A DNA stretch of 60,297 nucleotides from Ministeria vibrans ATCC 50519 (Eukaryota > Protista > Filasterea): the NCBI GenBank assembly GCA_943704425.1, contig CALSCP010002085.1, positions 1 through 60,297 on the forward strand, given 5' to 3'. Positions 8,491 to 49,154 of this stretch are shown piece by piece. The notes under the pieces were generated by a model that saw nothing but the letters and a program-made list of their open reading frames with translations, was not told the origin of the DNA and searched no databases. Each line of letters begins with the position of its first letter. Within the stretch, counting starts at the first letter, position 1. The position numbers and the translations under genes were made by a program.

Positions 8491-10526
8491 ATGCCTCTCG
8501 TGTCAACCAACGACCTCCTGGCAGCCAAGCTACAGGCGGACTTTGACGATGAGGCACCAGACAGCCGGTCGAATGGGGGGCAGGACCCAGCAGCGAGCAC
8601 GGGCGTGGACGCGCTCAACGACGACGACGACGCCGCCGACGACTGCGACGACGACCACGACGACGTGGTGGACGCCGCAACCAGCCATCTGCTGCACGAA
8701 AACCGACGCAAACGGCGCAACCGGCTGTGCAAGGTGGGGTGGACCATCTTCCTGCTTGTGGGGCTCACTGCGATTGGCGTGGGCGCGTACGTCATCGAGC
8801 CCAGTGCGGCCATTGCCGGAGCAGGTAGGCAGCGTGTTGACGCCGTTGTTTGCACTTGTCGTCTTACACTCCCTCTTCCGTCACGCGCTCTGTCTCGCGT
8901 TGCTCTTTGTAGCTATTCTGACCTGGGCTGTGTGGCTTCTCACCGTCGTGTTGCTCTTCTGGCCCACACGCATCGTTGCTTTACTTCTTCTTGCGTTTGT
9001 GCGTCGCATTACTTTCTACTCAAAGCAAGTCATGTACTACACTTCGGACCTGGTGCACCTGTCACACTATCTACTGTGGACCATTCTCAACCTCATCACA
9101 TTTGTGGGCGTCTTCAATGCCAACCCCGGCTCGTACACCACCTGTCCAACGCCGAGCACCTGCACCACGACCAAGCTCAACTTTGGCGAAGTCGCTGGCG
9201 TGCGTGCCCTTCTCATCTGCTGCATTGTCGGCTCGGGTGCCATTCTGTTTAAGCAACTCCTTGTTCTTCGGGTCGGCGAATCCCGTAAGGAGTAGAAGCA
9301 GGGCCAGAAGTGCTTGACTAACAGTCTTATTTTGTTGTTTGACAGTGTACTTTCGAGCATTCGCAGGGGCTCTGCGTGAAAACACATGGCGCATGCGACT
9401 GATGAAGTCACTTCAAGTCTTTGATAACACTTCGGTCGGCACAGAGTCTCTTGCAGCAGCAGCGTCCTCCATGACCATTGCTCGGTCCAGTCCTTCCAGC
9501 ACTGACCCCCATCCTACTCCTGCCCCGTCTCCCAACGATGATAATGGTGACAATGACAACGACTCAGTCTCCATCCCCATGACAACACTGCACGCTGAAC
9601 GCGAATCGTACATGGCAGCAGTGGCATCGCGCAACAACAGCACCTCATCCGCCTTAGATGCCCCTTCGTCTGCCGCAATCACCCACAGCACTTCAAGTGT
9701 CAAGATTGACCCCGTTTTATACACTGCTTCCTCTACCACAGCAGAGTCTTCCAACCGCCCATCGTCGTCAGGGGCGGTACTGCTCGCCTCGCGCGCCACT
9801 GCCTCGAAACGAACGAGCAGCAGTCGCAACATCAGACACAATAGCAGCGCAAGTATGCGTCGCAAGCAGTCGGTGCGCAAGAACTCGGAGACGAGCAACC
9901 TTTCAGACGACAACAAAGAAGTCGCGCCCGAGTCGCTCTACAGTATTTCAAAGCACAGCACCAAGAAGAAGGGCAGCCACAGCAGCAAACGCGGACAGCT
10001 CATCTCAACCGTCATCTCTCTCACCAACGCAGTCACCGAGTCGTCCGAGCTCAGTGAAATCCACGGACACATATCACTACCTAATTTTGACGACCAAGAG
10101 ATTGTACGGGCATTTGAGCATCGGTGGACATTATTGGCTCAAGCTGCATTTCCGGTGATTGCAGAGGGGCGAACTGTGATTGTGCTGGCAGACATTGAGC
10201 GAGCGGTGGGGACGCACGCAGATGCAGTCAAGGCGATGCGGCTGCTGAGCCAGCGCGACTCGACAGGGGGACAGCTGACGGAAGCGGCCTTTACTGAAGC
10301 CGTGCTGCAGCTGCACCACGACCGGCACAATCTGCGGCTGAGCATGGCGGAGAGTGCGTCGGTCTTGCAGGCCCTCGACACTGCCTTTCTCTCGGTCACC
10401 CTCTGCATTCTGCTTTTTGTCTTCCTTGCCATCTTCAAAGTCGATGTGGGTGCCATTTGGACGACCATTGCAGGTTAGTCAGTGATGACGCCTGTAAACC
10501 TACTTAATAACACACACACACACCAC

Positions 10527-10605
<79 letters not shown>

Positions 10606-11387
10606 ATCACTTTGTTTCTTTCTCCCTCCTTTATCTCTCTTGCTCTCTCTCTCTCTCGCGTAGGTCTGTTGGTTGCGCTCTCATTTGTGTTTGGTGATGC
10701 ACTCAAGAATTTCTTTGAGGCGACCCTTTTCATCTTTGTCGACCGTACGTTTGCAGTGGGCGATCGCATTGTGACCGAGGATATGGAGTATGTTGTCAAG
10801 CACATATCGGTAGGGATGGGACAGAGACGTAGAGATAGGGAGGGGAGAGAGAAAGAGAAAGTAGAGACATCAATATCAATATAGAGTGTCTTAGGGTCGG
10901 GCTCCATTGTTGACTCATTTTTTTGTTGTTGTCTTTTTTGTCTTAGTTGCGCCGGACTGAGTTGCAGCGATGGGATGGGGCTATTGTGAGTATGCTGAAT
11001 AGTGAGCTGTCGTCTCAGCCATTGATGAATCTGCGGCGCAGTGGACCGCAGATTGAAGAGATGCGTTTCCAGTTGGACTTTGATGTGACGCGTGCGGTGC
11101 AGGAGGAGCTCTTTGCGCGAATTGAAAAGTACGTTGCGTCGTTGCCGGACGACTGGCAGAACGTCGAGCTGGCGGTGAGTGCGGAAGGAGGCGAATCAAT
11201 GACCCTCAACGTGTGGGCGCGCGCCTGCTGCAACTTCCATGACCGCCGTGCGCGCCATCGTCGCACCACTGCCCTCGTTCTGTTCATTCGCGATGCCATG
11301 TTGGACCTTGACATTGATTACTTTCCCGACGAACTTCCCGTTGTCATGCGACAGGCTGAGGCAGCGGACAAGGAAAAAGTGGACTAA
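8491..11387 (+). CDS. MscS-like mechanosensitive channel (eukaryotic MSL type)
   Basis: N-terminal TM helices, a Ser-rich linker and an EF-hand-like segment, then LSFVFGDALKNFFEATLFIFVDRTFAVGDRI and NSELSSQPLMNLRRSG. Confidence 0.88.
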
Positions 11388-41585: not shown

Positions 41586-44482
41586 ATGTCAACATCCAGC
41601 GATTTTGCCGAGACGCGCTTCCACAAATACGCCCTTGTGGTCGGTCGAAGTGTGTTTGACAAAAACACTCTTGAGCTCGACACACTCGCAGGCGTCGCAC
41701 CGACCGTCCGCAACGTTGCCGTCGACCTTGTGCGCAACGGATTCAACGTCGTCGTGCTTGCAGACACGCCCATGGCGCTGTCGCAGCCCGCTTTCGACGC
41801 GACGCTGGAAAAACAATACAGCGCCATTGCCGACGACGCCGTGCGGGCTCGCCGGCTGCAGTGGTGCCGGGGGGCGGCTACGAGGCAGCACATTGCTGTC
41901 TGCGTAAAGGAACTGGCGATAATGGTCCCTGGACACCTTGCTGGGCGCCTCGACCAAATGGTCGTTTACGTTTGTGCACACGGCGTCGCCAACGCCAGCG
42001 ACGGGTCGTTTGGGGCCGCGCTGGGCGATGTGCAACGCACCGTAGCGTCGTACACGGACTCGGCGGGGGCTGCGGTCGCTGCGTGCTACGAGGGCGCGTA
42101 CACGATCGACAAGGTGCGCGAAGACGTGGCTGTCGACGAGGCGCTGCAACGGTGGTACAGCACGCTCGTGGTGATGGACACGTGCCAGGCAGGGGGCTCG
42201 TTTGGCGGCGCAACCGAGCCGTTTCTTCACTTGCAGGGCGAAGTCGAGGGCGAGAAGATGCAGAGGCTGTTCCAGCGCGAGTCGTACCAGTGCTTGGCGA
42301 GTGTGCCTTGCAAGCCAGCGGCCTTCTGCCAGCGTCACGGCACCGCGCTGTCCACGGCGTTGCAACGAGCATGGCTCCGTCCACCTGGCGATGGAGGGGC
42401 GTTTGCACGGGGGCGAGAGGGAGCGGGGCGGTGGGCGTCGATCGGGTGCGTGGTGGAGCGTGTGAATGTCGAGCTGGCGACACTCGCTCAGACGCACCCC
42501 GAGCACTTTTACAGCAACCCGGCGACGTGCGAGCTCAGCCGCATGCCATGGCGCGTCACGTCCAACACGGGAGAGTTCTTCGCATTCAACAGCAAGTACA
42601 CGAGTCTCAACAAGCTGAGAATGGTACCCGTCATCACGATGAGTTTTACGGGACGCGAGAAGGAGCTGAAGGAGTTGGAGACGCGTCTGCAAGAGAGTGG
42701 CACTGCAACGATTGGGAACCTGGCGGTGACTGCGGGGGGCGGAGTGGGAAAGACGACGCTGGCGGTGGAGTATGCGAAGCGGAACGAGCATATGTACCAT
42801 CTTTTGGTGTGGGTGCAAGGAGCGAGCGAGGCGACGATGGTCGCGTCGTATCGGCGAGTGGTGCACCTGTATTCGATCAAGGGAGTGCACCATCGGACGG
42901 CAAAGGACGAGGAAGTGGTGGAGGCGGTGAAGAGGTGGCTGGAGCAGGAGGAAGGATGGTTGATGGTGCTGGACGGATGTGATGTGATCACACGAGAGAT
43001 GGCGAAGATGATGCCGAGTTGTGGCGGAGGGACGCGAGGGAAGGTGCTTGTGACAACACGATTGCAGAGTGTGGATGAACTTGGTGAGGAGTTCAAGACG
43101 AGTCGGGTGGCACCGTTGTCGCTGGAGTTGTTTGATGAAGAGGAGGGACTGGCGTACATGAAGAAGCGGCTGTCAACATACCGAGAAGAAGACGACGATG
43201 AGGATTTGAGGAAGATTGTGGTGGAACTTGATGGAATGCCACTGGCACTGTCGCTGGCTGCGGGGTACTTGAGCCTGACGCCGTTTGTGACGGCGGGGGA
43301 GTATTTGGCACGGATGGAGGTGGACCGATTGGATGCGTTGAAGAAGAAGGTTCGGGGCGTTCAGACAGAGGATCGTGTGTTGTCGACGTATGGACGGAGC
43401 TTTGGACGGGCCGTGGAGATTGGAGGGAGGGTGATGGTTGAGAAGATGGTTGGGGTGATGGGGTTCCTGGAGGGGAATGGAATGGAGGAGGAGGTATTGC
43501 GACTGTTGGTGACGGGGAGGAGGACGAGGGAGGATGGTGTGGTGGGGAAGGATGAGTTTGATGTTGCGTTGGATGCACTGCGACAGTTGTCGATCGTGAA
43601 TGTGAGTCGGAATGTGTCGCGAATGCATCGGTTGGTGCAGGATGTGTGTCGGGCGGTGGCGTTTGGAGATGAGGATGAGCGGTGGGATGCGCTGCAGGGG
43701 CTTGGGAAAGTGTTGAAGGAAGAGATCGATGATGAGAAGAAGGTGTATGATGATATGGAATGGAGTCGTGTGGTGGGAGTGCATGGGATGCGAGTGTTGG
43801 GTTGGGCGAGGGGGGAGGTAGAGGAGAGGAGGGGAGCGGGAGATACTGAGGAGTATGAGGGGGGTGTTGTGTGGCTTGGGATCCATTTGAGTAATGCGTG
43901 GAGTACTTTGGGAGTGTACGGGTTGTCTCGAAGTGCGTCGNNNNNNNNNNNNNNNNNNNNNNNNNNNNNNNNNNNNNNNNNNNNNNNNNNNNNNNNNNNN
44001 NNNNNNNNNNNNNNNNNNNNNNNNNNNNNNNNNNNNNNNNNNNNNNNNNNNNNNNNNNNNNNNNNNNNNNNNNNNNNNNNNNNNNNNNNNNNNNNNNNNN
44101 NNNNNNNNNNNNNNATGCACAAGGAGACTACAGTCGTGCTCTTGAGTACTATGAGCGTGCTCTGACTATTAAAGAGAAGTCTGTTGGTCCCGACCACCCA
44201 TCCGCAGGAGCAACACTCTTCAACATGGCGCTTTTGTCCACGCAACAAACCAATTTTTCCCGTGCCCTTCAATACTGTCAACGTGCGCTTTCCATCTTCC
44301 AGCACACTCTTGGACCAAATCATCCGCATACGCAAAAGGCCTGCACGCTAAGCACCCAACTACAAACCCGCCGACCAAACAGCTACCGCTCACGTACTCC
44401 CCACTTCTCTCTTACCCATCTCATTGCATTCGGTTCTCTCACTCTTTTGGCTTTGGCCATTGCAGTTCGACTCAGAAAATGA
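41586..44482 (+). CDS. NLR-like STAND protein: caspase-like (C14) domain + NB-ARC + TPR + C-terminal TM; interrupted by an assembly gap
   Basis: CAHG and MDTCQ dyad motifs; GGVGKTTLA, LMVLDG, VLVTTR, GMPLAL, MHRLVQ; after the gap, TPRs QGDYSRALEYYERALTIKEKSVGPDHP; hydrophobic tail. Confidence 0.85.
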
Positions 44483-47364: not shown

Positions 47365-47703
47365 TACAAATGAAATTAATTTTTGTTAATCGTTTCGTTG
47401 AAAGTTGAATTGAATAAGAAGAAGACATTTCCATTTTATTATCAATCACAAACGAAAAGCGACCAACACAAACAGCTCCGAACCACTTTGTAAGCTACGG
47501 GAGCGTCGAGAGGGAGCGGAGACAGGTTGGCTGATGGCCAGACAAGTGACGCGATAGGCACCAGATAGACCATAGACCATACATATCCTGAGGGGGACAT
47601 AAGGCTCTCTCTGCCAACCAACACAAATGAAAGTTGAATTGGGAAAATGAAAAAAAAAAACGTACGGAAATTATAATAATACACAAAAAAAAAAAAAAAC
47701 AAA

Positions 47704-47822
47704 GGCGGACTCGGAGAATTGAACTCCGGACCTCTCGCACCCTAAGCGAGAATCATACTATTAGGGCTAAGAACACAAGGGAAGAACCGCTTGATGTTTT
47801 ATCCTCACTAGACCAAGTCCGC
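47704..47822 (-). tRNA. trnP: tRNA-Pro(AGG) with a 47-nt non-canonical intron in the D-loop (47759-47805, between G18 and G19)
   Basis: Removing the insert gives GCGGACTTGGTCTAGTG|GTATGATTCTCGCTTAGGGTGCGAGAGGTCCGGAGTTCAATTCTCCGAGTCCGCC. It has a perfect 7-bp acceptor stem, intact anticodon and T stems, and a downstream poly-T. Confidence 0.9.
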
Positions 47823-47849
47823 TGTTTTTATTGACGAGGTGCAAAAAGT

Positions 47850-47864
47850 GCTATATAAATATAT
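47850..47864 (-). promoter_or_regulatory. TATA-like element about 30 nt upstream of tRNA-Pro
   Basis: Minus strand reads ATATATTTATATAG, 28-42 nt upstream of G1. Confidence 0.45.
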
Positions 47865-48639
47865 TTTGACATGTGATATTGCAAAATCTTCCATGTCTGA
47901 CATGGCAGTCTCTACTTCATGTGTGAATGCACGTCAATGAATGGTGAAAGTGAAAAAAAAGTTTGAGTTTCGCGAATTAAATTTTTTTTAAAAAAAATTA
48001 TTTGAAGTGTGTGTATCAAGCCCATCTTGTAGTAACAATAAGCCATTGATGATAATGCGTTGAAAACAAAAGCACCCCAGCTTGGCCTTGAAGCAGATTT
48101 TTAAGTGGACTTTAATGGTAATAAATAATCGAGGAGAGAGCCACTAGGAAAGTGGAAACTCTCTTACGAGTGACGTCCGGCAGGCCGGCAGGTCGCCGGT
48201 CGGCGCTCGCCGCTCGGGGGTATGAGTGGTATCTAAAAGCCTTAAACTGCTAATGTTCCATTTTGAACATTTCGCGTGTTCGACACTGAAAAGATCGGGT
48301 TTGAACTTTTAATCAGATTTCGCTGTGAGTAGATAAGCCAATCAGAAGTCAATCTGCTAACTGTTGTTTCACTCACTTGTTTGCTTAATGCTTATATTTA
48401 TACTGCTACGACAAACAGACAAAGAAGAAGGCCGAAATATATAGAAGACGAAGAATCAATCAGAAAATTTAACAGATGATTCTGACATGTGCGTGGGTTT
48501 AGAGAATCATTGACAACCACGAAAAAGGGTTAACATAGATCGCTCAAGTATTTTAGCTTTGGGTGTGGGCTACTTCGTGATGACTATGGAAAATATGTTT
48601 AAATAGCACATTTGAGCGTACTCTGTAAAAACCTAAAAT

Positions 48640-48746
48640 TGCGAGATGCCCCGGGTTCAAAATTGAAAACGTCTGTTTTCGTGAACATTCCCCGGCTTCT
48701 CCATTCCCTTGGGGAAGTAACTCAGTGGTAGAGTGCTCGCTTTGCA
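48640..48746 (+). tRNA. trnA: Circularly permuted tRNA-Ala(UGC): 3' half 48640-48703 (T-loop intron 48661-48688), 7-nt spacer, 5' half 48711-48746
   Basis: Reordered mature sequence is GGGGAAGTAACTCAGTGGTAGAGTGCTCGCTTTGCA|TGCGAGATGCCCCGGGTTCAA|TCCCCGGCTTCTCCA. All four stems pair, and the G3:U70 alanine identity pair and A73 are present. Confidence 0.92.
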
Positions 48747-48748
48747 AG

Positions 48749-48767
48749 TTTTTTTTGTTTTTTTTTT
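48749..48767 (+). terminator. Pol III oligo-T terminator of the permuted tRNA-Ala
   Basis: T8-G-T10 run starting 3 nt after position 37 of the 5' half. Confidence 0.75.
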
Positions 48768-48859
48768 GGTCTTCCTACGTATAATGTCTTTTAAGTTAAA
48801 ATATTATGTGATTTAATCATTTCTTTTTTTTGGCCTTTATTCTTCTCCAGTAGTAGTAT

Positions 48860-49154
48860 AAATCACACATCACACATCTAACATCAGTAACACGAGACAC
48901 GAAAGAAGGATCAATCTGGATCATATCAAACACATAGTGTAATATAATACCGTGAGACCAATCACAATTATTGGATCACATATATTCTCAATCATATATT
49001 CATATTCAAATCACACATCACACATCTAACATCAGTAACACGAGACACGAAAGAAGGATCAATCTGGATCATATCAAACACATAGTGTAATATAATACCG
49101 TGAGACCAATCACAATTATTGGATCACATATATTCTCAATCATATATTCATATT
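48860..49154. repeat. Tandem direct duplication, 2 x 147 nt (period 148)
   Basis: 48860-49006 and 49008-49154 appear identical (AAATCACACATCACACATCTAAC...ATTCATATT). Confidence 0.9.

Follow-up and report, generated by a model that had tools for sequence, protein, structure and literature searches.

The window analysed here, a whole stretch of 60,297 nucleotides (nt) of contig CALSCP010002085.1 (C2085) from the Ministeria vibrans ATCC 50519 assembly GCA_943704425.1, carries on its forward strand a transfer RNA (tRNA) gene for alanine, anticodon UGC, whose two parts stand in permuted order. The part encoding tRNA positions 38–73 (48640–48703) precedes the part encoding positions 1–37 (48711–48746) on the same strand, and a 7-nt intervening sequence, TTCCCTT (48704–48710), separates them. 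A TATA-like box with a CAC element, TAAATAGCACATT (48600–48612), lies 28 nt 5′ of the 3′ half; it matches the pattern TWWAWANCACWTT and is presumed to be a TFIIIB-type promoter for RNA polymerase III (Pol III). The leader (48613–48639) ends in 13 nt (48627–48639) that can pair with the anticodon loop and the trailer to give a bulge-helix-bulge (BHB) motif at the junction. The 3′ half itself comes in two parts: positions 38–58 (48640–48660), with the 3′ strand of the anticodon stem, the variable loop, the 5′ strand of the T-stem and the start of the T-loop, and positions 59–73 (48689–48703), with the end of the T-loop, the 3′ strand of the T-stem and the 3′ strand of the acceptor stem, including U70 and the discriminator base A73. 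Between them is a predicted T-loop intron of 28 nt (48661–48688), placed at 58/59 or alternatively at 59/60, which brings the T-loop to 35 nt and accounts for the upstream part being 64 nt rather than 36 nt long. The 5′ half holds the 5′ strand of the acceptor stem with G3, the D-arm, the 5′ strand of the anticodon stem, the anticodon UGC and A37. The trailer (48747–48767) begins with AG and continues as T8, G and T10, a Pol III-type terminator tract (48749–48767) whose initial Us enter the outer helix of the BHB. A preliminary description of this DNA had placed the halves and the linker at exactly these coordinates; it had equated 48640–48703 with positions 38–73, which holds for the span, and had left the 28-nt insert unmentioned.

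After reordering, the four stems of the tRNA are complete, all 21 stem pairs are intact, and the signature bases of the T-loop and D-loop are in place. The pairing of the stems was as first described, as was the G3:U70 pair: G3 (48713) stands opposite U70 (48700) and A73 is at 48703, which gives the gene the identity elements of tRNA-Ala. The CCA end is absent from the gene, TTC following directly after A73, as is typical of eukaryotes. The intervening TTCCCTT contains neither a promoter nor a terminator signal. In the unconstrained minimum free energy (MFE) fold of the RNA in its native order (48622–48752), the anticodon, T, acceptor and D stems all form, with the linker as the loop that closes the 7-bp acceptor hairpin. 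At the level of sequence, the locus has all the defining features of a circularly permuted tRNA gene in the sense of Soma et al. 2007. We consider it highly probable that the locus is a functional nuclear gene for tRNA-Ala(UGC), circularly permuted and of type II (junction at 37/38), with a 7-nt intervening sequence and a 28-nt intron in the T-loop.

In the native DNA, ARAGORN detected no tRNA anywhere in the window, and Rfam gave no match at gathering scores in the window, nor at E-values up to 10 around the Ala locus; the expectation that standard tRNA scanners would miss the gene was borne out with these two tools. The further expectation that the reordered sequence would be recognized held in part. 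Simple reordering of the halves with the insert kept gave no ARAGORN call, and reordering combined with removal of any 28 nt such that 7 nt of T-loop remain gave tRNA-Ala(tgc) with its stems intact. As a control, we circularized and scanned 145 random 170-nt segments of the window with ARAGORN. None of the 145 yielded a tRNA, compared with 11 of 13 real permuted units from this genome that were called directly and the other two that were called after intron handling. Since no random segment gave a tRNA, we conclude that the call at the Ala locus is beyond chance.

The assembly is fragmented (2860 contigs) and has homopolymer and N-run problems, and the organism is found in algal cultures and algal metagenomes; the permuted order might on these grounds be an assembly artefact, or the locus might be foreign, algal DNA. 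The DNA data make this extremely unlikely. The 181-nt Ala locus and the 36-nt 5′ half each occur once in the 29.7 Mb assembly. Contigs from two DNA runs of separate studies, a 2022 run under the same species label and a 2024 run labelled ‘algae metagenome’, are colinear with the window over 47711–48889 and 47538–48873, both span the locus, and both agree with the described gene order. The contig from the 2024 run differs from the window by three single-nucleotide polymorphisms and three insertions or deletions in the flanks and by none within 48640–48746, a count too small for proof of selection. We conclude that colinear contigs with flank polymorphisms rule out an assembly artefact. Against a foreign origin, spliced protist genes flank the locus on a contig whose length is at least 97 kb, and permuted genes occur on at least 13 contigs of an assembly that has no gene for the light-harvesting domain Chloroa_b-bind.

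The genome-wide search for permuted tRNA genes that the preliminary description had called for recovered, with the Ala gene, at least 15 loci representing 12 isoacceptors. Between them they have junctions in the D-, anticodon and T-loops and include types I, II and IV as classified in PMC3978253. A first pattern, consisting of a B-box, a short gap and an A-box, gave 15 matches compared with one in a reversed control; matches on the mitochondrial contig, in tRNA arrays and in three coding sequences were set aside, and six permuted genes, for Lys(UUU), Arg(CCG), Arg(ACG), Gly(UCC), Arg(UCG) and Gly(CCC), were identified. Two copies of Lys(CUU), two of Ile(AAU), Ser(UGA) and Thr(CGU) were found through the promoter element, for which there were 107 matches compared with 49 in the control; 50 of these loci were read, so the number of permuted genes is a lower bound. 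A relaxed B-box to A-box pattern did not rise above noise (79 matches compared with 74 in the control) and was useful solely for the remaining two of the 14 loci besides Ala, a Val(AAC)-type pair whose acceptor stems pair 7/7. Circularized ARAGORN scans of the permuted units recovered the expected anticodons.

The members of this family vary in design. Thr(CGU) is built like the Ala gene, with a 37/38 junction and a T-loop intron. Both Lys(CUU) copies have their junction in the T-loop (59/60) and a leader/trailer helix of 9 bp, and Arg(UCG) combines a D-loop junction with a 12-nt intron in the anticodon loop. In the duplicated Lys(CUU) and Ile(AAU) pairs the exons are identical, and the few differences are in the leader or the linker. 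Their flanks are unrelated: similarity runs from ~12 nt before the TATA box into the terminator. Given that similarity ends at the promoter and the terminator, the conserved block corresponds to the predicted transcription unit. The permuted Ile(AAU) genes also carry a 4-nt insertion in the D-loop, which could be a mini-intron or an enlarged D-loop.

At the junction of the Ala gene, positions 32–35 (UUUG) pair 4/4 with UAAA of the leader (48634–48637) in the strict 37/38 register. This central helix is flanked by bulges of 3 nt each, C36-A37-A(+1) and A-U-U38, the 3′ bulge being 48638–48640. The outer helix, GUUUUU/AAAAAC, has 6 bp and one bulged C, and AAAAAC/GUUUUU is seen in the MFE fold. 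The relaxed BHB proposed earlier for this site was found as described, with the same pairs, bulges and extra C and a central helix of 4/4. The central helices of Gly(CCC) and Thr(CGU) are likewise 4/4, and those of two further type II genes are 3/4; a strict 4/4 helix in three of nine type II genes is an enrichment over a chance rate of ~2% per gene.

The T-loop insert fits an ectopic BHB intron, that is, one located away from 37/38, with a 4-bp helix, opposed bulges and a 7-nt loop restored upon removal. In the 58/59 register, a GAAAAC/GUUUUC hairpin is joined to a GUUC/GAAC central helix with AAA and AUU bulges. The MFE fold favours a UUCA/UGAA helix shifted by one step, which is compatible with 59/60, and the boundary of the intron is ambiguous between the two.

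The TATA/CAC element and the T-run are shared beyond the Ala locus. In the first six sister genes, a TATA-like box and then CAC(T/A)TT occur 35–70 nt upstream, and a T7+ run stands straight after the 5′ part. Most permuted genes have the element in front of them, and so do most ordinary dispersed tRNA genes that were checked: it is present at Thr, Val, Trp and Ala-CGC, and Phe has no clear motif. A T7+ run ends every permuted and every ordinary dispersed tRNA gene checked. Matches to TWWAWANCACWTT also include the (CT)n-associated repeat TATCACTTTGTTTCT, and these are not promoters. A frequent motif, TATATATCACTTTGTTTCT, runs into long microsatellites of the (CT)n or CTCAAA type, often shortly 5′ of coding exons; many matches to the promoter pattern are sites of this kind and not tRNA promoters. 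On the minus strand of contig C2371 (117220–117582), a TATATAGCACATT promoter and a T-run terminator surround ~130 nt of sequence that is not tRNA-like, which may be another small Pol III RNA.

The genome encodes machinery of the expected kind. Two genes with the catalytic domain of the tRNA splicing endonuclease (tRNA_int_endo) lie on contigs C1244 and C1078, one of them also with the N-terminal domain; a gene for RtcB is on contig C2497 and one for BRF1 at C2781:73853–74146. The TFIIIC domains B-block (PF04182) and Tau95 (PF09734) were not detected in a genome-wide six-frame search, a weak negative. Undetected TFIIIC domains with BRF1 present fit a transcription of tRNA genes that is independent of TFIIIC.

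We propose that the upstream TATA/CAC element, and not the inverted A and B boxes, would bring Pol III to the Ala gene. The polymerase would produce a single transcript of leader, 3′ half, linker, 5′ half and trailer and would stop in the T8/T10 run. Pairing of the leader with both the anticodon loop and the U-rich trailer would then create the bulge-helix-bulge, at which the tRNA splicing endonuclease, with subunits of the Sen2/Sen34 type, would cleave after A37 and before U38. RtcB would ligate both ends, giving a circular RNA closed through the TTCCCTT loop of the acceptor stem. The same endonuclease and RtcB may also remove the T-loop intron, and the linker would be excised by RNase P and tRNase Z before addition of CCA. 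We infer in this way that the gene is transcribed, that it passes through a circular intermediate, that cleavage falls at these exact sites and that the product is aminoacylated.

Several observations weigh against the Ala locus being a functional permuted gene that matures along this route. The outer helix of its BHB requires a 1-nt bulge, and the AU-rich central helix is unformed in the MFE fold. A strict 4/4 central helix is present in only three of the nine type II genes, and leader/trailer duplex energies across the family (mean z −0.27) do not improve on those of shuffled leaders. The T-loop intron of the Ala gene contains a T4 run, and T5–T6 runs lie in the introns and linkers of sister genes. 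Two array-type sequences resembling Ala(tgc) are present on contig C2083, and Ala(AGC) could decode GCA after editing of A34 to inosine, both of which bear on whether the permuted gene is needed. The RNA-like runs, which consist of spliced, poly(A)-type contigs, do not cover 47572–49045; we count this against the proposal, though it is neutral on expression. As to the junctions, the BHB motif is relaxed in many permuted genes, as reported for Cyanidioschyzon merolae. The true terminators in this genome are T7–T15, compared with internal runs of T4–T6. Because these internal runs lie in introns and linkers, Pol III termination must need longer runs.

The weak thermodynamic support for the BHB across the family raises the possibility that the locus is transcribed and matured differently, yielding a nicked tRNA whose two pieces stay together by base pairing once the linker has been removed, in the manner of two-piece transfer-messenger RNA (tmRNA), or a regulatory tRNA-like RNA that is not a decoder. 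Permuted, alanine-accepting tmRNA genes with a ‘CTCCA-linker-GGGG’ signature are, moreover, common in metagenomes. We regard this as very unlikely: a nick at 37/38 would interrupt the anticodon loop of a decoder tRNA that is complete in every other respect, the anticodon arm and the D-arm are both full and a tag reading frame is absent, the Ala junction has strict BHB geometry, and both the endonuclease and RtcB are encoded. The published algal cases, furthermore, mature via circles (PMC3978253). Identity of the locus as a two-piece tmRNA gene was considered and rejected, the D- and anticodon arms being complete and ARAGORN giving no tmRNA call and Rfam no tmRNA match.

We also considered whether the locus is a dead relic, left over from rearrangement or tandem duplication of a tRNA-Ala gene and no longer giving rise to a tRNA. 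The absence of RNA contigs over the locus and the T4 run in the T-loop insert would be in keeping with this, as would the existence of other Ala tRNA genes, namely AGC genes with a D-loop insert, a CGC gene and array-type UGC sequences. The 21 stem pairs, G3:U70, A73 and the signature bases of the loops are all intact, and the promoter and terminator are placed exactly as in ordinary tRNA genes. There are 14 sister loci of the same design, among them paralogue pairs conserved only inside the unit, and in the second strain the gene lacks the polymorphism seen in its flanks. With these points on the other side, we consider a relic unlikely.

Genome-wide, only two Ala 5′ halves with a canonical D-arm were found: that of the permuted UGC locus and that of an ordinary CGC gene on contig C2404. 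This pattern search for Ala 5′ halves found no ordinary dispersed Ala-UGC gene in the genome. The question of whether an intact Ala-UGC gene exists, raised in the preliminary description, thus has a divided answer: no ordinary dispersed gene, and the two array-type sequences on C2083. Ala(AGC) genes in normal order, at C434:20883–20964, C434:28922–29070 and C123:2351–2432, have a 9-nt insert in the D-loop that could be a mini-intron or an enlarged D-loop. Given possible decoding by Ala(AGC) and the array-type Ala(tgc) sequences, the permuted Ala gene is not demonstrably essential.

The arrays are dense series of tRNA-like sequences, spaced by 30–110 nt and without TATA/CAC promoters or T-run terminators, at C2083:6387–9457 and on contigs C585 and C2093. 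They hold tandem 112-nt units with an Ala body (G3:U70) and TGG or TGC anticodons, together with 74-nt ‘Leu’ tRNAs that lack the long arm, odd T-loops and minihelix-like fragments; in the C2083 array, one copy has a Pro anticodon and one an acceptor mismatch. Candidate origins for these arrays are viral, polycistronic or decaying.

A second disrupted tRNA gene lies beside the Ala gene. This divergent neighbour, a tRNA-Pro(AGG) gene in normal order on the minus strand (47704–47822), has the promoter TATATAGCACTTT at 47845–47857 and a ~46-nt insert in its D-loop. ARAGORN calls Pro(agg) at 47704–47822 after removal of the D-loop insert and not before, and the gene belongs to the same disrupted-tRNA system as the Ala gene. 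Another promoter-bearing gene in normal order, on the minus strand at C1049:8223–8585, extends over ~145 nt through one or more long intervening sequences; the ARAGORN call of Lys(ttt) with a 63-nt intron is probably wrong, and it looks like a multi-intron gene. Also near the Pro gene, at 47405–47580, is a dispersed repeat of ~165 nt with 162 candidate copies at 77–94% identity and very high read depth, which also occurs in RNA contigs. Copies of it adjoin tRNA-Phe on contig C1494 (about 9988–10421, with the tRNA at 10710). This repeat may resemble a miniature inverted-repeat transposable element or a short interspersed nuclear element and favour tRNA neighbourhoods.

The GC content of the window is near 49%, and its proteins include SNX17-FERM, an EGF/GPS receptor, NB-ARC, NAGPA and a member of the AAT family. 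Contig C2085 reaches at least 97 kb and there repeats part of the NB-ARC gene in inverted orientation (97265–97318, corresponding to 43090–43143 in the window). Contig C1523 (55.9 kb; 55,949 bp) is the mitochondrial genome, with about 30 tRNA genes; in it TGA encodes Trp: cox1 has 14 such codons, and the contig carries a tRNA whose anticodon is UCA. The search of the whole assembly for Chloroa_b-bind found no such light-harvesting gene, and the genome has three genes with full integrin-beta domains. Cytosolic HSP70 is 100% identical solely to metagenome proteins in ENA and to an entry from the MMETSP transcriptome of Alexandrium margalefii, which we take to be a culture contaminant; its best named matches are from animals, at 70–74% identity. 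Queries with the NB-ARC and AAT-family proteins returned no close relative with a name. DNA of the host is present in runs under one species label (2011, 2022) and in algal metagenomes. Assignment to Amoeboaphelidium was rejected: its published GC is 40.5%, its UAR codons are read as Gln and it is annotated in NCBI, whereas the host genome has long open reading frames of the ordinary kind. Given that light-harvesting genes are absent and three integrin-beta genes are present, we conclude that the host is not an alga. It is a non-photosynthetic protist with integrin-type adhesion genes that lacks annotation in public protein sets and often co-occurs with algal cultures. The earlier suggestion of a non-algal heterotroph, made from the neighbouring genes, agrees with these results as far as it was tested, including the SNX17-FERM and EGF/GPS receptor genes in the window.

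The Ala gene is a permuted gene of the known Cyanidioschyzon kind, in a new, non-algal lineage, and is part of a large system. As in C. merolae (PMC3978253), both halves are on one strand in the order 3′ half, short intervening sequence, 5′ half; a TATA-like box is found no more than 50 bp upstream, a T-stretch follows downstream, the junction forms a BHB, and CCA is unencoded. The two genomes also share the co-occurrence of types I, II and IV, additional introns including ectopic ones in the D- and T-regions, and undetected DNA-binding subunits of TFIIIC (in C. merolae, TFC1 and TFC3 are missing; PMC3978253). The intervening sequences of known permuted genes are 1–74 nt long (PMC3978253), and the 7 nt observed here are within that range. 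There are also differences: C. merolae is an alga with 11 loci, whereas the present host is non-photosynthetic, bears integrins and has at least 15; the host has an added, conserved CAC(T/A)TT promoter element; and its Ala(UGC) permutation is an independent gene.

Other systems are less alike. The permuted genes of prasinophytes (Ostreococcus, Micromonas), of Auxenochlorella and of the Bigelowiella natans nucleomorph (PMC12633428) resemble the Ala gene in being mostly of type II (37/38), with intervening sequences of 5–16 nt. In that group, however, the junctions are nearly all of type II, extra introns are few, and all of the bearers are green-algal or derived from green algae. The permuted genes of the prasinophyte group are reportedly the subject of work by Maruyama et al. 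in 2010. The mix of junction types and ectopic introns in the host is closest to C. merolae and not to the prasinophyte pattern. Thermofilum pendens (PMC3218864) likewise combines permutation with a further intron and has a 59/60 junction in the T-loop, as in the host Lys(CUU) genes, but its endonuclease and promoter are archaeal, CCA is encoded, and there are just two such genes. Split tRNA genes of Nanoarchaeum equitans and Caldivirga are similar in that their halves are joined at a BHB by splicing endonuclease and ligase; there, the halves are separate units at distant loci, whereas in the host they lie 7 nt apart in one unit.

Two-piece tmRNA, from the permuted ssrA genes of alpha-proteobacteria and some cyanobacteria, shares with the Ala locus the alanine-accepting module of G3:U70 acceptor stem and T-arm, but it is bacterial, consists of two pieces, includes a tag open reading frame and lacks an anticodon arm, whereas the host locus encodes a complete decoder tRNA. 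Two-piece tmRNAs were reportedly traced to circularly permuted ssrA genes by Keiler et al. in 2000. A scan of metagenomes with the pattern CTCCA-linker-GGGGNNNTAGCTCAGTGGTAGAG found no relative of the permuted Ala gene. Judged by eye, its matches mostly had the layout of permuted two-piece tmRNA, and the others included tandem tRNA-Ala arrays with spacers of 6–8 nt. One metagenome contig contained an ordinary Ala(UGC) gene with an unusual D-stem, TAACTC/GAGT, which resembles that of the permuted gene of the host.

A literature search, which covered few subscription journals, found permuted tRNA genes only in C. merolae, prasinophytes, Auxenochlorella, the B. natans nucleomorph and Thermofilum pendens, that is, in algae and archaea, which leaves standing the suggestion that the gene may mark a new lineage for such genes. 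We think it likely that the host is an undersampled, integrin-bearing heterotrophic protist, obazoan or holozoan-like, with a genome-wide disrupted-tRNA system: 15 or more permuted genes spread over types I, II and IV, ectopic introns in the D-, T- and anticodon loops, expression driven by the TATA/CAC element and no detectable DNA-binding subunits of TFIIIC, and that this is the first such system outside algae and Archaea.

Permuted tRNA genes of eukaryotes have been treated as an algal curiosity and debated either as relics of early eukaryotes or archaea or as innovations of algae. A rich set of them in a plastid-less, integrin-bearing protist uncouples permuted tRNA genes from photosynthetic lineages. 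In another supergroup, an endonuclease of the Sen2/Sen34 type and RtcB would presumably serve junctions in the D-, anticodon and T-loops alike, and the host offers a second, independent system for asking whether loss of TFIIIC dependence permits scrambling of the A and B boxes. Because standard tRNA annotation misses permuted genes, here for at least 12 isoacceptors, inferences about codon usage or ‘missing tRNAs’ for such protists would be wrong. If our reading is true, the capacity to process permuted tRNAs would be either ancestral to eukaryotes or recurrent once transcription has become independent of the internal A and B boxes.

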